From assembly GCA_019828565.1 (NCBI GenBank), contig JAHDYR010000009.1, positions 248,001 to 312,000 on the forward strand: 64,000 nucleotides of DNA. Reading direction: 5' to 3'. Position 1 is the stretch's first letter, and each line of letters begins with the position of its first letter. Source of the stretch: Carpediemonas membranifera BICM (taxonomy: Eukaryota; Protista; Fornicata). Below, piece after piece: positions 18,428 through 51,283 of the stretch. Both the position numbers and the translations under genes were made by a program. Below the pieces are notes generated by a model. It worked only from the letters and a program-made list of their open reading frames with translations, searched no databases and was not told where the DNA came from.

Positions 18428-18620
18428 TGTTGCGCAGGATAAACACATTGTTCGACCCTTCGATAGCACAAGCCTCTGTGCTGCGCAGGATTAGAATTGT
18501 TGAGTCCAAAACACACAGTGATCCGAGCAGCATCAGGATCGCAGTGTGGTTCATCATACTCTATCAATCGTGCGCTGCATATCACGCGCGCTGCAGCGCG
18601 TGCTTGCTCAACTTAGCAAG
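18428..18620 (-). ncRNA. candidate Fanzor omegaRNA scaffold, copy A
   Basis: Directly after the Fanzor stop. Hairpins cttgct-aagttg-agcaag, gatcc..ggatc and agcaca-gaggct-tgtgct. Ends in tcgaacaatgtgtttatcctgcgcaaca, shared with copy B. Confidence 0.7.
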
Positions 18621-19892
18621 TTAATGATAGCGAGGAAGAGCACCTCTCTGGGAGTCGTAGTGGAAAGGAGATTGCTCTATCTGATCTGAAGTTGCATCGA
18701 AGGTGCACCAAAGGATGTTCTCGCTGGCGCTCTTATCTCGGTGAGAGAGATTGAGAAGAATGACTCTCTGCTCGGGATGCCGACGTAGCCGTTCAACGCG
18801 CCATGGAGCTCCCTCGCACGCGGGATTCTGGCAGAGCATGGTGCGGTGTGTGTGCACCACGCGTCTGAAGTGTGCTTTGCAGTATGGGCACACGATGGAA
18901 GTGCGTAATTCGGAGACCATCGTGACACTCACGACGACGTTGTGCCGGAGCATGATGCCAGGGAGAGCTCGAGCAAAGTGGCGGTACGGTGCACAGGAGG
19001 GAGTGCCGGCGGAACCGAACAGTGCAGCCCCATACACGACTTCGAGATGAATGGGCTCCGGGGGGCGCCCCCCGAGATCATCAAGGAGTTGACGTCCAGC
19101 CCGGGCGAAGTGCTTCAGGCGCAGACAGTGATTGGCAAAAGTCGCACGGCGGAAACACTTTCTCGTCCCCTCGTTGATGATCTGAACGGTGTTCTCATGG
19201 ACAAACCTAATCGACTGTTTGAGAGCCTCTAGACTTGTCGTTTTGAACGATGCTGCGCTCATATTCATGCGGAAAGAGAGGGTGGCAGTGTAGCCACACT
19301 TAGCGAGTACGCCAGATACACTCTGCCCGTCTGGGCGGCGGATTGTGTAGCCGCCCAGCGACCGAGCACCAGGGTCGAAGCCCATGAGAGCTTGAATGTC
19401 CGGGGCAGGAGTAGCTTCGGCGTCATCCTGACCGAGCCGAGTCCGCTTGTTGCTGCTACCCTTTTTGTACGTGGGCCGGTCAGCCACCCGACCGCCACGG
19501 TATTTCTCGCGACCCACCCAAACCGTCACAGCAACAGAGACCCCGTCTGTCTTCACATAGAGCACTCTGCGGAGCTTGGTGATGTCGCCGTGATCACGCT
19601 CGTATTCAGCCACCTGCTCGTCGGTCAAATTCTTGGTTGCTGACCAATTCACGTGCACACGCAGGCGCCGCTTCATCGCTGGGGTGAGCGACATATAACC
19701 GTACTCGAGGGTCATGCTGGAGCGAGAACCAAGATCCCGCCCAGAACCGTCGCTCTTACCATCGCCGACGCCCTCATGTCCGCTACCCTTCTGGTGTACG
19801 ACAGGTGGGCCGTCAGACTGAACCTGTTCAGTCCTCTGGAGTTCATCCCAGGGGGGTCGACAGCTTAAGTCACCTTTACATGAATCCTCCAC
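18621..19892 (-). mobile_element. Fanzor1-like RuvC nuclease, 5'-truncated (homology begins near 19715)
   Basis: KTDGVSV; RuvC-I GFDPG; VVYG at the usual RuvC-II position; SELRTSIVCPYC; CQNPAC; RuvC-III HRDKSASENI. GTG start and no N-terminal REC-like part. Confidence 0.88.
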
Positions 19893-27221: not shown

Positions 27222-27750
27222 AGCATCCTTGGTTGATTTATCGTGGAAATAAAGCGCATTAGGACCCATGTGCGGTGTGTGCTATCCTGCTCGGCGACAA
27301 AGTGAAGTCTGCTATAGACGATTGAGAGTTACTTTACTGCTTGCACTGTGCACTCTATGATACTTCATTACCTCTTCCCGCTCTCCCTTCCTTCTTCTTG
27401 AGAGTGATATTTCGATAGTCAGTCATCATCGTCGGGGGTCATCAATCAGTGCTTCTCCAGTCCTCTCGCCAAGCAACTAGCTTCCCACCTATCGTCTACC
27501 CCATCTTACTTCCATCCACTCTCTTCTGCTTGTCGTATTTCGGGGTCTTGATCATGACGTCTTTGCATCATCACCATGGCCTTCCATCGCACAGCGGGCT
27601 CTTCTATGCCGCTGCCTGAAGATAAAACACTTCAGTTCTTCTAATTCTCGCCATTATCACTGCATAGTCTCGTTCATTAAACGTCTGTCGTCTTTGATGT
27701 GTGTTGTTAACAAGTGATCGGTTCATTCACCGCAAAACGCAGAGCTTCAC

Positions 27751-29700
27751 ATGACCAGCATCTATACGGTCAAGTTCTCCATATCCTCCATTCTCCATAA
27801 CCGTAGAAACGTGATTCCTTTCATCGCGGACTTCTACGCCGGATTGGAGAACAGGCTCTGCTCGTTCACGAAGGCCAAGTTCTTTCATACTTGCCTTCTG
27901 TCATACATCGCCGCGTGTTGCCACCACGCCAATCTCTCCTTGCCCGTGCATGACCAGGCTCTGCACCAGGCCATCGTTATCGTCGCCTACCGGCGAAGTG
28001 GAGAGTACCGAAACCTCGCCGCCGACTCACTCGTCGACCGCTTCCTGGGCGCGAAAAAATACACCGCAGTTCGGCAGGTTGTCACCTCAATAGCCGAGAT
28101 GCCACTGTGGCATGACGAGTTCATCATCCGCCTCAGCACCGCCCTCAGGGCAGCTCGTCAACAGTGCCCTCGCGAGTTCGACGTGTGGCTGGGCGAATAT
28201 GCTACGAGCACCAAGCTGTGGCTCGTCAATGCCCTTGAAGGTTACTGCTGGCGCCTGGCGAAGATCATCACTCGGGTCGACACTGCCCTGACTCAGCGTG
28301 ACCCAGACGTGCCCCGGGATGACATCACCCGGTTGCGCACCGAACAACGCGCTGTCAAGGCGATCGTTGATGAGCACCTTGCAAAGATCTCAACTCCGGG
28401 ACGAGTCGACGAGGGCGTTCTACTCACGCTGCCCTGCGTCTGGCGGATCTCCGCGGCTCCGGGAGAGCTCACGGATATGGTTGCGGCATTCAACCCCGCC
28501 CATCCACCTCTTCCGGGTGATAAGCCGCTGGCTGGCCCCAAGCTTGTTCCGATGGCTCCGGTCCGCCCCGGGTTCATGCACGTTCCCTGTTCTCTCAACG
28601 TGCTGAACCCGGCTTGGCTTGCCCAACTTGGGGTCGACCCGGAGCATCACGCCACTGAGCGCATGACGCGAGAGCAGCTGGAGGCTCTTCCTCCGAACAT
28701 CCGTCGGGTGCTGTCTGTCAAGGCAGATGGGGTCGCCGTGGACCTCACGGTCCAAGTTGGTGCTCTGCCATACGTCAGAAGAAGTGCCAGTGGCAACCCG
28801 ACGATGAAGCGAAAGGCTCGGGAGCGTCTGGGTGTGGATGACGCGGATGCTCGCCCCGCGCCAGACCCCGATGCCCACCTCATGGGTTTCGACCCGGGCG
28901 CGAGGTCCATCGGAGGGTATTAAATCAGGCACCCCGATGGCACCACCAGCTCCGGCGTCCTTCCAAAGTGCGGATACACTAAGACGCCAAGTTTCGGCTT
29001 TGATATGACGGCCGCGTCGTTCAAGAGCACAAGACTAGTGAGTATCAACAACTCTATTAGGTTTGTGCTGGACAACGCGAACGACATTTTCGAGGCTGGA
29101 AAGCGTAAGTCTTTCCGCCGAGTGCGCTTTGCGAACCACATCCTTCGCCAGAAGCACTTCGCCCGCTGCGGCCAACAGTTGGCTCGGGAGTTCGGTTGGC
29201 TTCGCCACCATCCCATCGCCACCCCCATTCGCCTGAAAGTCTTCTACGGGAGCTCGGGATTCACCACGCCTGCTGGTATGTTCATTCCTTGCGCGCCATA
29301 TCGAAAGTTCGCGAGAGAGATAGTTTCCCTTCTCAAGGGGTATAACATTGTCGTCGATCTTAACATGGTTAACGAGGATCGCACCACCGTCGTCTGCCCT
29401 CACTGCCACGCCCCCTACAAGCGAGTTCGTCCGCGTGATGACCAGCACGTTCACCCACATCGTGTGATGCTCTGCGAAAATCCACAGTGCCGTGGTGCTC
29501 AGTGGCGCGCAACAGTTCCTGATGCTCTGAATGTTGATCATCGGGACAAGAGTGCTGCAGAGAACATCCTGTGGCGTTCTCTTGCCACGGAAGATGAGCT
29601 CAGTGGCTCTCCGTTCAGTCGCACATTGATCCCGCGCCTTCCAACATCATTCCAGTATCATCAATTGGCTAACCGCCAACATTCGTCTACGGACGGATGA
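27751..29700 (+). mobile_element. full-length Fanzor1-like nuclease (about 650 codons) interrupted by one in-frame TAA at 28921-28923
   Basis: ORFs 27751-28923 and 29005-29700 are in the same frame. KADGVAV, GFDPG, VFYG, NEDRTTVVCPHC, CENPQC, HRDKSAAENI. Colinear with the 18621-19892 protein. Confidence 0.9.
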
Positions 29701-29779
29701 TGTTGTACAGTTTGGCACTTTGATCGTTCCTTTCAGGCCCTGTCTGGAGGTTCGAACAATGTGTTTATACTGCGCAACA
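29662..29779 (+). ncRNA. candidate Fanzor omegaRNA scaffold, copy B
   Basis: Hairpins ttggc-taacc-gccaa, cattcgtc-TACG-gacggatg and tttcaggc-cct-gtctggag. Long-range stem 29701-29711/29769-29779. Shared 28-nt end motif at 29752-29779. Confidence 0.7.
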
Positions 29780-29792
29780 CACAAAGACATCA

Positions 29793-31214
29793 ATGATGGA
29801 TCGTCGCGATAGATTGGTCCAGAATGAAATGCTAGACGTCCTGTCAAGGATGTATGGCTCAGAGAATGACATTGCTCTGCTCCGAATCATCTTAGCTGAG
29901 CGTTTCAGCGCTCTTCCGGGTGTTCGTCGTGCTGACGTCGCTTTCAATCGCACAGAAGGTGAAAACGGAGCCACCATATCATACAATGCTGTTCCAAACC
30001 TCACCAACACAGATTGGCGGAACTTGCGGCTGTTTGTCGGTCTGACGAGCGGCAAGCCCATCGGAGAGATCAGTGGCGCCGTTCTGAACAAGCTCCCTGG
30101 ATTCATGCACGCTAAGGGGTCTAGTACGTGGAGCAAGCCTATCAGGGGGCCCACGACCACCAAATACTCTGCCTTCATCTCTGACATCGGCCTCTTCAAC
30201 TCTCTCCGAAACGCATGGACAGTTGGGACTGATAAGACGGATAGCGAGGAGGAGCAGGCGTCCCACAACCACGCATGTACCACAGCGTACGCGGAAGTGG
30301 TCCGTACGGGCCCTACTACTGGCATTTACGACATCCTCGCTGCCCCATCGACCTTCGCCATTGCCCCTCCCCGCCGCATGTTTACGAGCTGGTTTGGCGT
30401 CCTCCGTGCCTTTTGGTCAACCCGGGAGATATCCAAGGTCACGATCACTGCCTCTGAGGCGATCAAGTCCCTTGAACCCCGTGACAACAAGGCTGGCCTC
30501 GCCATGGGCTTATTCAAGAACAACATGAAGTTCTCCCACGGGCGGCCAGTCAAGGGGTTCCAGGCCTCAGCCTCAGCAGAGGCAGCAATGGTCAAGCCCA
30601 AGGCCCGGGCCCCACCGGTTCCCCAGGGTCGAGTCGAGGCGGCACTATCCCTGACCAACCCTCTTGGGCCATGGTCATGGGCCCCAGCGCTGACTACCGG
30701 TGTCTCCGCCGGTGTTCTCCGGGCCCGCTCATCTGACAGTGGAAGCAAGGATGCTTCTTTCCACGACCGGTTCCACTTGGGCGGAGGTGCTCTCCGCCAC
30801 TTCCAGGCGAAGAAGGTGGGACCATGCGAGCCCCGCAGCCCGATGTGCCCTGAGGCGCCGGTGTCTGTCGGCGTCGACTGGCTTGGCGGCGACACATACT
30901 GGAACAGTTATGTCGGGGCAAATGTGCCCATGCCCATCCACAGGCTGGCTGACATCCCAAAGGTCGGCCGTTTCCTCCAGGCGGCCCAGGGTCTGAAGGA
31001 TGTCATATTTGCTCATGTATACGGTAACGCCGGCGGGTTGACTCTCGGCAAGGATCCCAGGGCGCTGATCAAGGATATCCGCTGTTCAGTGGGGGCCGGG
31101 GTGCTGGTGAGGACCGGTGGTGGGCTGATGGAGATCGGGCTGGGCGTGCCCCTGTGCTTCCAGCCATTCGACGTCACGCAGGGCCTTGTGTTCGGGGTGG
31201 GGCTCGAGCTGTGA
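29793..31214 (+). CDS. SAM50: Sam50/Omp85 beta-barrel assembly protein
   Basis: DRFHLGG.ALRHF, LGGDTYW, IRCSVGAGVL, and a C-terminal beta-signal-like LVFGVGLEL. Confidence 0.8.
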   Translation: MMDRRDRLVQNEMLDVLSRMYGSENDIALLRIILAERFSALPGVRRADVAFNRTEGENGATISYNAVPNLTNTDWRNLRLFVGLTSGKPIGEISGAVLNKLPGFMHAKGSSTWSKPIRGPTTTKYSAFISDIGLFNSLRNAWTVGTDKTDSEEEQASHNHACTTAYAEVVRTGPTTGIYDILAAPSTFAIAPPRRMFTSWFGVLRAFWSTREISKVTITASEAIKSLEPRDNKAGLAMGLFKNNMKFSHGRPVKGFQASASAEAAMVKPKARAPPVPQGRVEAALSLTNPLGPWSWAPALTTGVSAGVLRARSSDSGSKDASFHDRFHLGGGALRHFQAKKVGPCEPRSPMCPEAPVSVGVDWLGGDTYWNSYVGANVPMPIHRLADIPKVGRFLQAAQGLKDVIFAHVYGNAGGLTLGKDPRALIKDIRCSVGAGVLVRTGGGLMEIGLGVPLCFQPFDVTQGLVFGVGLEL

Positions 31215-43258: not shown

Positions 43259-46200
43259 ATGAAGCCAGAAGCCACCACGGAGAGCATTGGTGGCGCATTA
43301 GAGAACAACAGAGCAGAAAGTGATAGAACAAGGTCTGAAATCGGCGATATACCCGCTAGCGTGCAGGATTCAACGATCCTACCTGATACCAACGCTACAG
43401 AGCAGGAAGAGAAGCAGAACCGCGCGCACGAGCTATTACAGAAGGCTACACATCATTCCCGCGCCGGCGATCATTCTCGTGCGAAAACCTTTGCTTTGAA
43501 GGCGATCGCTCTCCTTGAAGAGACAGATTTCCACGTCGAGCTCGCTGTAGCGCACCACAACCTCGCCGTGGAGCACGAGTTTCTCAAGGCGTACCATCAG
43601 GCAATAGACGAGTACGACAAGTGTGCCAGGATCCTCCACAAGCACACGGACGTCACCGACGACGTTCCCGCCCAGTTGCTGCAGGCAAGGAAGGATGCAA
43701 GAGCACTGCTGCTGTCCAAGATCACATACACAGGCCCAGCACGGCGAGCGAAGTCACCCGACCAGACACAGAAACCGTCGAGCTATGGCTTGAAGCGGAT
43801 GACCGTGCAGCACAAGGTGGTGAGGTCAGCAAAGGCCAGGCCTGGGTCAACTATCAAGCCGACTCGACCCAGCAGCGGGGGTAGGCCAAGACCACCGAGG
43901 ACCAAGCGCTCACTCACCCCGGTCCAGGGGTTCTTCGACTCGAACCCGACTCTGGCCCGTTTCCAGCTGTCGACCAAGCAGACGCCGACCCCGACTGGGC
44001 GGAAGTTTGCATTCCCACTGGCTAAGGGTAGCTCTTACGAGCCGCAGAAGGCGTTTGACGTTACCGTGCCGCTGAATGTGAGTTTGCCAAAAATTGATCG
44101 GACGCCGAAGAAAAGTACCGTCAGAAAGCCAGCTACAGCTGGAGCTAATGGACGAGCTGGCCGTGCGTTACCCAGCGTGCCTAGACGATCGAATGGAGAG
44201 CCCGATGAGAACTTCCCAACCCCCAAACCAGTGCTTATTGGGAGAAAGACTCCAATCAAAGTCAGGGCATGCTCGCCAGTCGTCAGAGACCGTCTTAAGG
44301 CCCAACACGAGAGAATAGAGGCCGAGCTCGAATACGGTGAAGAGGAGCCCCAAGATGATTTGACTGCGTCATTTGATAATTCCCCGAGACCACTCACCGC
44401 CTCCCCCGGCACTCCAGTACCGTTGACGAGCGATCGCCCAAGTTTGAAGGGGACGCCGGTTACTGATTCAGACGCTGATGACAAGTTCACATGGACGACC
44501 ACAATTAGTGATGTAAGGGAGGGAGCTGAGACTCCGGATAGACTCAACAGATTGCCGGAGATTGGAGAAGTGACATCGTCGGTCATTGAATCTGATTTCG
44601 AGACTGAGGACGAGTTTTCTGAAGGGATGAGGCAGACACCGCACTTTGAGGGGCAGTTTGAGCTCAACTTCGAGCGGGTAGCCGAGGGGTACGACCTGGG
44701 TGACGCCGACGAGAAGATCGAAGCTGACGCTGAGCAGGCCGACGCCGACGAGAAGATCGAGGCCGACTCCGACGAGAAGATCGAAGCTGACGCTGAGCAG
44801 GCCGACGCCGACGAGAAGATCGAAGCTGACGCTGAGCAGGCCGACGCCGACGAGAAGATCGAAGCTGACGCTGAGCAGGCCGACTCCGACGAGAAGATCG
44901 AAGCCGACGCCGACGAGAAGATCGAGGCCGACGCTGAGCAGGCCGACGCCGACGAGAAGATCGAAGCTGACGCTGAGCAGGCCGACGCCGACGAGAAGAT
45001 CGAGGCCGACTCCGACGAGAAGATCGAAGCTGACGCTGAGCAGGCCGACGCCGACGAGAAGATCGAGGCCGACGCTGAGCAGGCCGACTCCGATGAGAAG
45101 ATCGAAGCCGACTCCGACGAGAAGATCGAAGCTGACGCTGAGCAGGCCGACTCCGACGAGAAGATCGAAGCCGACTCCGACGAGAAGATCGAAGCTGACG
45201 CTGAGCAGGCCGACTCCGACGAGAAGATCGAAGCCGACTCCGACGAGAAGATCGAAGCTGACGCTGAGCAGGCCGACGCCGACGAGAAGATCGAGGCCGA
45301 CTCCGACGAGAAGATCGAAGCTGACGCTGAGCAGGCCGACTCCGACGAGAAGATCGAAGCTGACGCTGAGCAGGCCGACGCCGACGAGAAGATCGAAGCT
45401 GACGCTGAGCAGGCCGACGCCGACGAGAAGATCGAAGCCGACTCCGACGAGAAGATCGAAGCTGACGCTGAGCAGGCCGACTCCGACGAGAAGATCGAAG
45501 CTGACGCTGAGCAGGCCGACTCCGACGAGAAGATCGAAGCTGACGCTGAGCAGGCCGACTCCGACGAGAAGATCGAAGCCGACTCCGACGAGAAGATCGA
45601 AGCTGACGCTGAGCAGGCCGACTCCGACGAGAAGATCGAAGCCGACTCCGACGAGAAGATCGAAGCTGACGCTGAGCAGGCCGACTCCGACGAGAAGATC
45701 GAAGCTGACGCTGAGCAGGCCGACTCCGACGAGAAGATCGAGGCCGACTCCGACGAGAAGATCGAAGCTGACGCTGAGCAGGCCGACTCCGACGAGAAGA
45801 TCGAAGCCGACTCCGACGAGAAGATCGAGGCCGACGCTGAGCAGGCCGACTCCGACGAGAAGATCGAAGCCGACTCCGACGAGAAGATCGAAGCTGACGC
45901 TGAGCAGGCCGACGCCGACGAGAAGATCGAAGCCGACTCCGACGAGAAGATCGAAGCTGACGCTGAGCAGGCCGACGCCGACGAGAAGATCGAGGCCGAC
46001 GCTGAGCAGGCCGACTCCGATGAGAAGATCGAAGCCGACTCCGACGAGAAGATCGAAGCTGACGCTGAGCAGGCCGACTCCGACGAGAAGATCGAGGCCG
46101 ACTCGACGAGAAGATCGAAGCTGACGCTGAGCAGGCCGACGCCGACGAGAAGATCCGAAGCCGACTCCGACGAAGATCGAAGCTGACGCTGAGCAGGCCG

Positions 46201-49200
46201 ACGCCGACGAGAAGATCGAGGCCGACTCCGACGAGAAGATCGAAGCTGACGCTGAGCAGGCCGACGCCGACGAGAAGATCGAGGCCGACTCCGACGAGAA
46301 GATCGAAGCTGACGCTGAGCAGGCCGACGCCGACGAGAAGATCGAGGCCGACTCCGACGAGAAGATCGAAGCTGACGCTGAGCAGGCCGACGCCGACGAG
46401 AAGATCGAAGCCGACTCCGACGAGAAGATCGAAGCTGACGCTGAGCAGGCCGACTCCGACGAGAAGATCGAGGCCGACTCCGACGAGAAGATCGAAGCTG
46501 ACGCTGAGCAGGCCGACGCCGACGAGAAGATCGAAGCTGACGCAAAGATCGAAGCTGACGCTGAGCAGGCCGACGCCGACGAGAAGATCGAGGCCGACTC
46601 CGACGAGAAGATCGAAGCTGACGCTGAGCAGGCCGACGCCGACGAGAAGATCGAGGCCGACTCCGACGAGAAGATCGAAGCTGACGCTGAGCAGGCCGAC
46701 GCCGACGAGAAGATCGAAGCCGACTCCGACGAGAAGATCGAAGCTGACGCTGAGCAGGCCGACGCCGACGAGAAGATCGAGGCCGACGCTGAGCAGGCCG
46801 ACGCCGACGAGAAGATCGAAGCTGACGCTGAGCAGGCCGACGCCGACGAGAAGATCGAAGCTGACGCTGAGCAGGCCGACGCCGACGAGAAGATCGAGGC
46901 CGACGCTGAGCAGGCCGACGCCGACGAGAAGATCGAAGCTGACGCTGAGCAGGCCGACTCCGACGAGAAGATCGAAGCCGACTCCGACGAGAAGATCGAA
47001 GCTGACGCTGAGCAGGCCGACGCCGACGAGAAGATCGAGGCCGACTCCGACGAGAAGATCGAAGCTGACGCTGAGCAGGCCGACTCCGACGAGAAGATCG
47101 AGGCCGACTCCGACGAGAAGATCGAAGCTGACGCTGAGCAGGCCGACTCCGACGAGAAGATCGAAGCTGACGCTGAGCAGGCCGACTCCGACGAGAAGAT
47201 CGAAGCCGACTCCGACGAGAAGATCGAAGCTGACGCTGAGCAGGCCGACGCCGACGAGAAGATCGAGGCCGACGCTGAGCAGGCCGACGCCGACGAGAAG
47301 ATCGAAGCTGACGCTGAGCAGGCCGACTCCGACGAGAAGATCGAAGCCGACTCCGACGAGAAGATCGAAGCTGACGCTGAGCAGGCCGACGCCGACGAGA
47401 AGATCGAGGCCGACGCTGAGCAGGCCGACTCCGACGAGAAGATCGAAGCCGACTCCGACGAGAAGATCGAGGCCGACGCTGAGCAGGCCGACTCCGATGA
47501 GAAGATCGAGGCCGACTCCGACGAGAAGATCGAAGCTGACGCTGAGCAGGCCGACTCCGACGAGAAGATCGAAGCCGACTCCGACGAGAAGATCGAGGCC
47601 GACGCTGAGCAGGCCGACTCCGATGAGAAGATCGAAGCCGACTCCGACGAGAAGATCGAAGCTGACGCTGAGCAGGCCGACTCCGACGAGAAGATCGAAG
47701 CCGACTCCGACGAGAAGATCGAAGCTGACGCTGAGCAGGCCGACTCCGACGAGAAGATCGAAGCCGACTCCGACGAGAAGATCGAAGCTGACGCTGAGCA
47801 GGCCGACTCCGACGAGAAGATCGAAGCCGACTCCGACGAGAAGATCGAAGCTGACGCTGAGCAGGCCGACGCCGACGAGAAGATCGAAGCCGACTCCGAC
47901 GAGAAGATCGAAGCTGACGCTGAGCAGGCCGACTCCGACGAGAAGATCGAAGCCGACTCCGACGAGAAGATCGAAGCTGACGCTGAGCAGGCCGACTCCG
48001 ACGAGAAGATCGAAGCTGACGCTGAGCAGGCCGACGCCGACGAGAAGATCGAAGCTGACGCTGAGCAGGCCGACGCCGACGAGAAGATCGAGGCCGACGC
48101 TGAGCAGGCCGACGCCGACGAGAAGATCGAAGCTGACGCTGAGCAGGCCGACTCCGACGAGAAGATCGAAGCCGACTCCGACGAGAAGATCGAGGCCGAC
48201 GCTGAGCAGGCCGACTCCGACGAGAAGATCGAAGCCGACTCCGACGAGAAGATCGAAGCTGACGCTGAGCAGGCCGACTCCGACGAGAAGATCGAAGCTG
48301 ACGCTGAGCAGGCCGACGCCGACGAGAAGATCGAAGCTGACGCTGAGCAGGCCGACGCCGACGAGAAGATCGAGGCCGACTCCGACGAGAAGATCGAAGC
48401 TGACGCTGAGCAGGCCGACGCCGACGAGAAGATCGAGGCCGACGCTGAGCAGGCCGACTCCGACGAGAAGATCGAAGCCGACTCCGACGAGAAGATCGAG
48501 GCCGACGCTGAGCAGGCCGACTCCGACGAGAAGATCGAAGCCGACTCCGACGAGAAGATCGAAGCTGACGCTGAGCAGGCCGACGCCGACGAGAAGATCG
48601 AGGCCGACTCCGACGAGAAGATCGAAGCTGACGCTGAGCAGGCCGACTCCGACGAGAAGATCGAGGCCGACTCCGACGAGAAGATCGAAGCTGACGCTGA
48701 GCAGGCCGACGCCGACGAGAAGATCGAAGCCGACTCCGACGAGAAGATCGAAGCTGACGCTGAGCAGGCCGACTCCGACGAGAAGATCGAAGCCGACTCC
48801 GACGAGAAGATCGAAGCTGACGCTGAGCAGGCCGACTCCGACGAGAAGATCGAAGCCGACTCCGACGAGAAGATCGAAGCTGACGCTGAGCAGGCCGACT
48901 CCGACGAGAAGATCGAAGCCGACTCCGACGAGAAGATCGAAGCTGACGCTGAGCAGGCCGACGCCGATGAGAAGATCGAAGCCGACTCCGACGAGAAGAT
49001 CGAAGCTGACGCTGAGCAGGCCGACGCCGACGAGAAGATCGAGGCCGACGCTGAGCAGGCCGACTCCGACGAGAAGATCGAAGCCGACGCTGAGCAGCCC
49101 CTCCACCCACGCATCCTACAGGTGGACGGCAGCCCGACCCGCATCTACAGCGACCACATCACGAGCACCATCAAGCTCACCGCCGCAGTCGGCACCGCCA

Positions 49201-49532
49201 TCACCCAGGCCGAGCAGGCCGCAGAGCAGGCCGAGGCCATGACGAGGAAGCTGTCGCACCCCGCCTTCCCCACCCGATCCTACTTCCTCCCCGCTGCTGA
49301 CGAGAACGCCGGTAACCACGGAGTCAATGCGGAGTCCCCCGAGCCTAGTGCCTCAGTGCTCAGTGGCCGGAGCTCCACGATGAGCCAGCACGAGGGATCT
49401 CAGTTCATCAAGGACCAGATCCGAAAGACACTCACCAATGCTGACAAGCTGCTTGAAGGGACTGACGCCAAGGTCACATGGGGCCGGAGTATCGCTGTGC
49501 CGCCCCTGCCTGGAAGACTCACTGTTGATTAG
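43259..49532 (+). CDS. giant acidic repeat protein with N-terminal TPR-like helices (apparent frameshifts at about 46104-46175)
   Basis: LAVAHHNLAVEHEFL is TPR-like. The repeat frame continues into ORF 49122-49532 after indels of -1, +1 and -2. Confidence 0.75.
44701..49097 (+). repeat. coding minisatellite of interspersed 39-bp and 24-bp units
   Basis: 39-bp unit encodes DEKIEADAEQAD(A/S); 24-bp unit encodes DEKIEADS. Confidence 0.98.
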
Positions 49533-51283
49533 ACGTGCATTTTACTTATTTTACTCTTTTTTAAAGATCTCTCTTTCCTTCCTGAACGGGTCGTTGGAGA
49601 CAGTGGAGGTGATACTGGCTGGTCAACTGGAGTCAAAGTCGCTTGTGGAGTTTTTACACGAGCACCAGAGCATTGCGTTTGAACATCAATCCAGGGTGGT
49701 CTGGTCGTGGAACCCATCAAATCTAGTCTTGACCAGTGGAGACGGCTACTAGGACTGTTGATGGGATCACTCGGCCGGGCCAACCATGACTCAGGTTGCT
49801 GTGCCTGTGAATGTCCTTGCTCTTGGCAATGTCCTTGTTCCTGGCGTTGCATTGCTCAAATGTCGACCATCCGTGAATCCGATGAGGTCAACCTGTCAAA
49901 GTACCACTAATGAGTGCGTGGCATTGGGCCAGCGCGAGCGTGGTGTTATTTATTTATGAAGACCTGCATTTACAGGCCAGGACTGCGTGCAGCTGGGGCG
50001 AGAGGCGACGCGGGCCATGATGATCAGAGACAAGGCTCTTGGAAATCTTTATCCCACGCCCCGTACTCCTGTCCCGATATTCACTCACGTAGACGCGGCT
50101 ATCCATGGGAAAGGCTGCACCTGGATCAGGGAAGGGGGTCTGCAGTACAGTCGGGCAGAGTCGTCACTCCGGCCGGGTCGACGTTACCAGGCAATTCACA
50201 AAAGACGTCCCGTTTATCCAACGTTCCATTCGCTGATGAGTTGTTAAAGGGAGCGTTAGTCGACCCGTTGGCGGCGCTGTAGGGCGTCTTCCGACCTCAT
50301 TCATTGCTTACATGCAACTTCTCATGCGTGGCCACCCAACCCGCGGCAACCCTTTGCCCAGCCGACGTCACCATCAGTCATCACACTGCCAAGGAACAAT
50401 ATCCAAGCCACGTTCCTCCCGCCAAGGTGATCTTCCTTTTTTTCGCGCATTTTTTCTCACAACTCATCATGGCATGGTTGTGTGAATTGTGTGAACTCGC
50501 GATTCATGCAGTTAGTGATGCTGATTTCGTACTCTTTCTCTCTTCTACACGTCTAGATCGCATTTATTCTCGCTATCTTTGTTTCGGTCTCTCCACGGTG
50601 CCGAACTAAACAACATCAATCAGGTGCGCCGACGGGACCCTGGAGCGGCAACAAGGTAAGTCCGCCACCATCATATGATGTCAGAATCCTAGCTGTGCGC
50701 CACGGCGTCTTCGGACCCGTGGGATTGCATTGGCCTCTGGCCCTTGCTGCACACCGGGACAGCCGCGCCACTTTGTACGGCGTGGAACCCGAGTTAGTGC
50801 TAGGAACGTGTGGATAGTATGAGACTACCGCGCGACATCAGATGGACCTGGGACATTGAGCCTAGATGATACACTTGGACAACCCCGCAGCTGCTGGGAC
50901 TGGCGAGTGTATGCGGGAGGGCAGCCCGCGGCGTGGAGCCCCCATTGGAGTCATACCCATGGGGGGTCATTTTCGTCCGAAATCCAGCACGCCAACTCTC
51001 TGCCCGGCTTCAGCAAGTCTGCCGTGAAGTAACAACGAGTCATGATATGTGCTATCGCCACGACGACAATGCGGAGTCATTTATCTCTCTAAAGATGATG
51101 TTACAGCAGAGACCACCATCAGCCCGAGCGACCAGCGACCCCTTTGAAACGCCCATAAACGCTGTATTTATGGCGTGCAATGCTGTTTCGCAGGTCTGCG
51201 GTGCCAGGAGAGCGTAGCTTAAGGTGCCTCGCCTGAGTCGAGAAGTCACCATTTTTCGTTTTCCAGAGTGCTGGAAAGCTCGA

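Follow-up and report, generated by a model that had tools for sequence, protein, structure and literature searches.

A divergent Fanzor1 family carried by short-repeat mobile elements in Carpediemonas membranifera and a recombinant pseudogene among its copies

A mobile element in the free-living metamonad Carpediemonas membranifera contains a single long open reading frame (ORF), which belongs to a protein family that, as judged from sequence profiles and a modelled structure, is homologous to the eukaryotic nuclease Fanzor1 along its full length. The element lies in the 64,000-nt stretch of DNA analyzed here (the window, G000:C10:248001-312000 of the 24.2-Mb assembly). The copy found in the window is best explained as a degenerate pseudogene that arose by recombination between two subfamilies (A and B) of a non-autonomous mobile element, and we assign a probability of roughly 0.8 to this explanation as a whole. 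How does such an element move? We propose that the Fanzor1 gene is the sole antisense cargo of retroelements with very short long terminal repeats (micro-LTR retroelements), which resident Ty3/gypsy elements would move in trans and insert at transcription start sites, where the end of the element would take over from the host promoter. This broader proposal stands, in our judgment, at even odds. The coordinates of all features are collected in Table 1.

Relationship of the protein family to Fanzor1

The gene occupies an ATG-initiated ORF at 27751-28923, and the same frame resumes after the TAA codon at 28921-28923 and continues for 258 codons until a TGA codon at 29698-29700, giving approximately 648 aa for both pieces combined. 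The two pieces were searched separately, and full-length work used an intact paralogue; the fold test covered the intact paralogue and the family profile, not the window copy. The first-pass annotation had described two in-frame ORFs split by one TAA codon together with a set of nuclease motifs, all of which were located in their places. The SVKADGV motif is present in the window copy, and the zinc-finger Cys residues are encoded at 29395 and 29404 (NEDRTTVVCPHC) and, as a second pair in CENPQC, at 29473 and 29488. Jiang et al. (PMC10530073) describe Pro or Gly at the position of the canonical RuvC-II Glu in Fanzors, with a substitute Glu approximately 45 residues away; the spacing from Gly to Glu in the window copy is 42 residues. 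When the family was combined with Fanzor1-like proteins in one alignment (A4), the RuvC-I Asp was invariant, and the Gly, the relocated Glu and the four Cys residues were nearly invariant.

Word-indexed homologue searches returned only hypothetical proteins of C. membranifera, and a search with a mixed alignment brought no more. The names that these homologues carry at NCBI agree with the first-pass suggestion of a metamonad-like genome. A profile of 15 family members, compared with 1.84 billion representatives using HMMER, reached the proteins P0044 (E = 2.9e-5), P0045 (7.8e-5) and P0047 (8e-4). P0044 and P0047 score above the Pfam cut-off for PF07282, and P0044 directly matches SpuFz1. A profile built from these three proteins and relatives of P0044 (A3) matched SpuFz1 (8gkh) at 1.7e-73, PpFz1 at 1.3e-65 and GtFz1 at 9.4e-48, and its matches outside Fanzor1 were weaker (3.4e-5 for Fanzor2 and 4e-3 for TnpB). 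The hhalign comparison of the family with A3 gave a probability of 99.25% and an E value of 5.5e-20 over 568 columns that extend from the N-terminal strand to the C terminus, with the catalytic motifs in register. In these columns, the Fanzor1 N-terminal half is aligned with the 27751-28920 piece and the Fanzor1 RuvC/TNB region with the C-terminal piece. The latter also shows a weak Pfam match to PF07282 (E = 0.023), and several paralogues show sub-threshold matches to the same entry, in line with the zinc finger.

The structural comparison points in the same direction. AlphaFold2 modelling of the intact paralogue with a joint alignment yielded a mean predicted local distance difference test score (pLDDT) of 72.9 and a predicted template modelling score (pTM) of 0.67. 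The top seven Foldseek matches of this model are all Fanzor1 structures (E = 1e-10 to 4e-9). VIA-align superposed the model on Fanzor1 with Z scores of 15.8-18.3 over approximately 475 residues, and the next tier consisted of Cas12f (at most 10.5), Fanzor2 (9.5) and TnpB (8.6). The comparison with SpuFz1 and TnpB that the first-pass annotation had proposed, when run on the paralogue and the family profile, thus favored Fanzor1 by a wide margin, and its description of a divergent Fanzor1-family protein with a RuvC-I Asp, a relocated Glu, a zinc finger and a RuvC-III Asp is borne out by both profile and structure matches.

Several observations weigh against this assignment. Searches of both pieces against Pfam and NCBIfam found PF07282 (Cas12f1-like TNB) only below the threshold, and neither the C-terminal piece nor the family profile alone matched any sequence in the PDB. 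AlphaFold2 produced an unusable model (pLDDT 44.8) from the family-only alignment. Moreover, the alignment used for the paralogue model contained Fanzor1-like sequences, and the structural match is therefore not independent of the sequence evidence.

Intact copies of the family would encode an RNA-guided nuclease that uses an omegaRNA derived from the 3' end of the element. The segment 29560-29779, which represents a B-type 3' end, is predicted to fold at -76.9 kcal/mol (z = -4.3), and none of 200 shuffled sequences was equally stable. The A- and C-type 3' ends are not unusually stable, and a search of Rfam with the 3' end found no match. The 18 B copies are 95% identical per column and too alike for covariation analysis of the 3' end. 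The terminal hairpin could be part of an omegaRNA scaffold or could serve as a self-priming structure.

Copy number, subfamilies and an intact paralogue

The first-pass annotation treated the gene as a single locus. Instead, it is one among more than 150 copies and fragments: in six-frame searches of the genome, at least 150 matches were obtained with the C-terminal piece and 109 with the N-terminal piece, the majority of them truncated or stop-bearing. The copies form three subfamilies. Subfamily A is 94-96% identical to the N-terminal piece of the window copy (as seen in copies on C9 and C16), and subfamily B is 97-100% identical to the C-terminal piece, which as a protein is 100% identical to the copy in L002 and 98% identical to that in L003. 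Subfamily C is more distant, with identities of approximately 40% and 54% to the N- and C-terminal pieces, respectively. The genome-wide check for intact copies suggested by the first-pass annotation identified at least one, an uninterrupted 642-aa subfamily C gene that retains all motifs (L041:1664-3589:-, corresponding to G000:C18:237663-239588 on the minus strand). This gene is a better candidate for function than the window copy.

Two further observations concern the family. The window holds a second Fanzor copy at 18428-19892 on the minus strand, which belongs to subfamily C, is 5'-truncated (ORF 18621-19892) and has a right repeat that ends near 18477. In addition, the protein P0002 is publicly annotated as a "cytosine deaminase"; this name looks wrong because the alignment of P0002 with the Fanzor family covers 83% of the query.

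Boundaries and terminal repeats of the carrier element

The limits of the element in the window are evident from its relatives. Homology to subfamily A begins sharply at 27303, homology to subfamily B stops sharply at 29779, and the flanks are unrelated; the right boundary is sharp in 18 copies. Full copies are elements of 2.2-2.5 kb with TG...CA ends and terminal direct repeats of 34-66 bp. The inverted match between the two ends is limited to TG/CA (6 bp in subfamily A), which falls short of the terminal inverted repeats (TIRs) of DNA transposons. No transposase was found in or beside the element, as the first-pass annotation had noted. The carrier itself, with ends that are LTR-like and not TIR-like, had escaped the first-pass annotation.

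A purine tract antisense to the ORF adjoins the left repeat in all three subfamilies, with 75-95% purine over 20 nt; a purine content of at least 85% is reached by 0.43% of the 20-mers in the window. These polypurine tracts end in GGTAA/TG, GGCAG/TG and GGTAG/TG, one per subfamily. Solo repeats also occur. A solo B repeat with the target-site duplication GACTC lies in L050 within the end of another element, and a B-type repeat is found in the window at 18428-18470, a few bases beyond the right repeat of the subfamily C copy. We read the latter as a solo repeat, not as a second guide unit.

Insertion near gene starts

The carrier elements appear to be inserted in a targeted manner. In 11 of 12 subfamily A left flanks, a TAWCCTGC-like (WWHHCTGC-like) motif ends 12 nt ahead of the element. 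Such motifs are enriched 20-45 nt upstream of ATG codons, with seven and nine matches in two bins against 1.3 expected. Moreover, 14 of 54 right ends are located within 60 nt of a true ORF start (ORFs of at least 120 aa) on the same strand, compared with 4.0% in a random control (p = 2e-8). The right repeats of subfamilies B and C themselves carry a TAWCCTGC-like motif 6-8 nt from their ends; in the window, the repeat at 29741-29779 contains the promoter-like motif TTTATACTGC.

The window copy illustrates the possible consequence for the host. Its right junction is covered by a DNA contig of single-copy depth (91), which spans 29757-29900 without any difference. The distance from motif to ATG was 18 nt prior to insertion and is now 19 nt when measured from the motif of the element. 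The downstream host gene would thus keep a promoter because the right end brings a motif at a nearly equal distance from the ATG codon. We infer that insertion is targeted at or near transcription start sites and that the element end is able to replace the promoter.

Several related observations were made at these sites. A recurrent TAACCTGC / TAATCTGC / TATCCTGC motif is present 20-45 nt upstream of host-gene ATG codons in the window and in the other loci, and may represent a core promoter element in this species. At window position 27264, 39 nt ahead of the element, a contig from an RNA run ends in poly(A). This position is likely the polyadenylation site of the upstream gene, and the insertion therefore occurred in a very short intergenic space. 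In L002, L012, L036, L050 and L058, elements often lie approximately 5-10 nt after, or inside, the right end of another element; nested or adjacent elements are expected if the right repeat mimics the preferred target. The idea that Fanzor itself makes the 5-bp staggered cut at insertion was set aside, given that the 12-nt stretch separating the motif from the insertion point differs among copies and could not be matched by a fixed guide.

Retroelement or DNA transposon

The genome offers a parallel to the carrier. Resident Ty3/gypsy elements have the Pfam domain order protease, reverse transcriptase (RT), RNase H and integrase. Their LTRs of 82 bp are paired 4278 bp apart, a polypurine tract ending in GGTAG/TG precedes the 3' LTR, and a 10-nt palindrome follows the 5' LTR where the tRNA primer site is expected. 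In types B and C of the carrier, a hairpin or an inverted repeat is found at the expected position of the primer-binding site. The TG...CA ends, the target-site duplications, the direct and solo repeats, the polypurine tract and the likeness to the gypsy elements lead us to propose that the carrier may be a micro-LTR retroelement that transports the Fanzor gene in antisense orientation. It would be copied via an RNA antisense to the Fanzor gene, and the integrase of the resident Ty3/gypsy elements would insert it in trans.

Some features of the carrier do not fit easily with this proposal. The two ends of the window copy belong to different subfamilies (A on the left, B on the right), its duplication is shifted by 2 nt, and the terminal repeats are imperfect. 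No tRNA-type primer-binding site follows the repeat. Should transcripts begin 12 nt past the motif, no R region would be left within the B-type repeat. Furthermore, many copies are internal-deletion derivatives, which would fit cut-and-paste DNA transposons too. No RT or integrase match was seen inside the 4.55-kb repeat-bounded units described below among the scored candidates (150 of 716 for integrase and 98 of 1357 for RT), a result that decides nothing.

An alternative that we consider unlikely, and that is nonetheless the strongest competitor, is that the carrier is a non-autonomous cut-and-paste DNA transposon moved by a DDE transposase that generates 5-bp duplications. Fanzor and its omegaRNA would then cut the emptied donor site so that repair restores the element, as in the TnpB model. 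The Fanzor1 elements known to date all reside in DNA transposons (PMC3627910, PMC10711439), the internal-deletion derivatives retain both ends as after abortive gap repair, and the structured 3' end fits an omegaRNA that reads into the flank. However, the elements have no TIRs past TG/CA and instead show direct repeats, solo repeats with a 5-bp duplication and, in all three subfamilies, a polypurine tract beside one repeat; this architecture parallels that of the resident gypsy elements with their 82-bp LTRs. In addition, no transposase matching such a transposon was seen.

Additional observations pertain to the resident retroelements and to possible partners of the carrier. Many copies of the Ty3/gypsy family (L061-L066 and L005) are 99.6-100% identical, L005 holds a tandem array of three LTR-plus-390-nt units, and at least 716 integrase candidates were counted within 24 Mb. 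At 12 or more places, including C11:577555/582108, C13:389046/393599 and C1:1513863/1518415, two copies of the initial 25 nt of the B-type left repeat lie on the same strand at a spacing of 4551-4555 bp. The resulting 4.55-kb repeat-bounded unit, with examples at C11:577555-582132, C13:389046-393623 and C27:103554-108131, may represent the autonomous partner of the carrier. On the minus strand of L047 (G000:C13:341500-347000), an 857-aa ORF joins the first 1.5 kb of a B-type element in frame to Ty3/gypsy pol from approximately nt 1288 of that element. A gypsy 3' LTR is located at C13:341072, and the hybrid amounts to approximately 4.6 kb.

The window copy is a recombinant pseudogene

Sliding identity divides the window copy into two parts, with 96-100% identity to subfamily A over 27303-28887 and 97-100% identity to subfamily B over 28899-29779. 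The breakpoint is located inside the F-D-P-G codons, in the longest patch that is identical between A and B, and the TAA codon sits 30 nt downstream of the switch. The TAA codon represents a nonsense change because subfamily B reads TAC and subfamily A reads TTC at this position. Moreover, the window copy carries an Ala residue at the nearly invariant Thr position of TDG and has lost one LVP of the conserved LVPxVP through a three-codon deletion. Given these three lesions, the window copy is a pseudogene, and the first-pass view that a single nonsense change separates it from function does not hold for an A/B recombinant that bears two additional changes. A variant genetic code in which TAA is a sense codon, as in some diplomonads, was excluded, since TAA serves as an ordinary terminator that closes 13 of 31 long plus-strand frames and the paralogues read TAC or TTC.

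Could the TAA codon instead be an assembly or polishing error that conceals an intact and possibly active Fanzor1 gene of 648 aa? The sequencing runs were consulted as Logan contigs, which are fragmented across the repeat and carry no strand or RNA-end information. The sole contig over 28923 reads C, which would restore TAC, and the C-terminal piece is, as noted, identical in protein sequence to another copy. However, the depth of this contig is 1564, in contrast to approximately 90 for single-copy sequence, and its C therefore reflects the consensus of a collapsed family rather than the window locus. Polishing errors in repeats usually shift a sequence toward the consensus and not away from it, and the Thr-to-Ala change and the three-codon deletion would persist even if the TAA codon were corrected. 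An error is thus improbable, and we regard the window copy as a true pseudogene.

Table 1. Positions of the carrier element, its gene and adjoining features in the window
Feature	Position	Strand	Remark
Whole mobile element, 2477 bp	27303..29779	+	sole long ORF is the Fanzor1-like gene
Left target-site duplication, CAAAG	27298..27302	.	perfect duplications of 5 bp, each time with another sequence, flank seven other full copies
Right CAAAG	29782..29786	.	two bases (CA) away from the element end
Left terminal repeat, subfamily A type, 65 bp, TGAAGT...ACTTCA	27303..27367	+	subfamily A elements have its last 30 nt at their right end
Polypurine tract adjoining the left repeat	27368..27391	-	90% purine over 20 nt
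N-terminal piece of the Fanzor1-like ORF	27751..28920	+	390 aa; REC/WED part and RuvC-I strand; subfamily A
A/B recombination breakpoint	28888..28898	+	last A-specific base 28887, first B-specific base 28899
RuvC-I catalytic Asp (GFDPG)	28891..28893	+	invariant column D392 of A4; corresponds to the IDPG Asp of the Fanzor1 profile (hhalign)
In-frame TAA (nonsense)	28921..28923	+	TAC (Tyr) in B copies and TTC in A copies at the same codon
C-terminal piece	28924..29700	+	258 aa plus TGA; RuvC-II/III and zinc finger; subfamily B
Gly at the canonical RuvC-II position (VFYG)	29248..29250	+	nearly invariant G507 in A4
Relocated catalytic Glu (NEDRTT, within NEDRTTVVCPHC)	29374..29376	+	nearly invariant E547 in A4
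Zinc finger, CxxC...CxxxxC	29395..29490	+	C554, C557, C573 and C578 nearly invariant in A4
RuvC-III Asp (HRDKSAAENI)	29545..29547	+	aligned with NRDVNAAxNI of the Fanzor1 profile
Structured 3' end	29700..29779	+	80-nt imperfect hairpin between the right repeat and the bases directly preceding it
Right terminal repeat, subfamily B type, ending ...GCAACA	29741..29779	+	last ~27 nt also in the B-type left end
Host motif CTATCCTGC	27282..27290	+	at a distance of exactly 12 nt from the left end; putative core promoter for the host gene that follows
Host gene, 473 aa	29793..31214	+	ATG 13 nt past the element

Other feature of the window

In the region 44000-50000 of the window, the AT skew is very strong and reaches 0.54. 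Both strands of this region have long frames that overlap, and it contains a repetitive coding repeat rich in Asp, Glu and Lys.

Implications

Fanzors are eukaryotic RNA-guided nucleases that are under development as compact genome editors. A highly divergent family in a deep-branching, free-living metamonad broadens the known range of Fanzors and provides at least one intact candidate gene. If the proposal on the carrier is correct, this family would represent the first retrotransposon-borne Fanzor. The model in which Fanzor homes after excision would need revision if the carrier moves through RNA: the accepted rationale of restoring the element after excision would not apply because copy-and-paste movement creates no empty donor sites, and a different function for the nuclease, such as homing into empty alleles, would be required. 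The placement of the elements upstream of start codons, together with the promoter-like motif in the element end, provides a handle on core promoters in this organism. A promoter-like element end would also offer a way for a gene-dense genome to tolerate hundreds of insertions.

Comparison with known systems

In the literature searched, no paper pairs Fanzor with Carpediemonas or Metamonada, and the pairing with Trichomonas retrieved only an unrelated review. Fanzor surveys make no mention of LTR elements (PMC10530073, PMC10711439, PMC3627910), and no Fanzor has been reported so far in an LTR-retrotransposon-like vehicle.

The Carpediemonas family resembles the structurally characterized Fanzor1 proteins (SpuFz1, 8gkh; PpFz1, 9cf0; GtFz1, 9cer) in its full-length fold, domain order and IDPG-type RuvC-I motif. 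It also shares the Gly residue at the old RuvC-II site, the catalytic Glu just before the zinc finger, the RDxxAxxNI motif of RuvC-III, a length of approximately 640 aa and its status as the sole gene of a multicopy non-autonomous element. However, the family is only 12-15% identical to the solved proteins and lacks an above-threshold Pfam match; its host is a metamonad, and the ends of its vehicle are direct instead of inverted repeats.

TnpB (from IS200/IS605 and IS607) and Fanzor2 have the same RuvC and zinc-finger core and would be expected to use a 3'-encoded guide RNA that reads into the flank. The Carpediemonas family matches these systems far more weakly than Fanzor1 in sequence and structure, has no TnpA partner and is carried by an element with a 5-bp target duplication, whereas Y1 and serine recombinase elements make none. 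An origin of the protein in the Fanzor2 or a prokaryote-like TnpB lineage is very improbable because, although the core is common to all of these proteins and Cas12f, Fanzor2 and TnpB structures also match with Z scores of 8.6-10.5, the Fanzor1 matches span the whole protein, including the N-terminal half, and are 5-8 Z units higher, the A3 profile matches Fanzor1 with E values of 1e-48 to 1e-73 and Fanzor2 with 3e-5, and a length of approximately 645 aa is that of a Fanzor1.

As a vehicle, the carrier is comparable to non-autonomous elements such as terminal-repeat retrotransposons in miniature (TRIM) and large retrotransposon derivatives (LARD) and to the resident Ty3/gypsy elements. It differs from them in that its cargo is a nuclease gene on the opposite strand, its repeats of 34-66 bp are imperfect and it has no tRNA primer-binding site. 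It shares with them the TG...CA ends, the 5-bp duplications, and the terminal direct and solo repeats, and with the gypsy elements in particular a polypurine tract that ends in GGTAR/TG beside one repeat and LTRs that are very short (82 bp in gypsy). Like the carrier, Ty3 and Tf1 insert close to gene starts.

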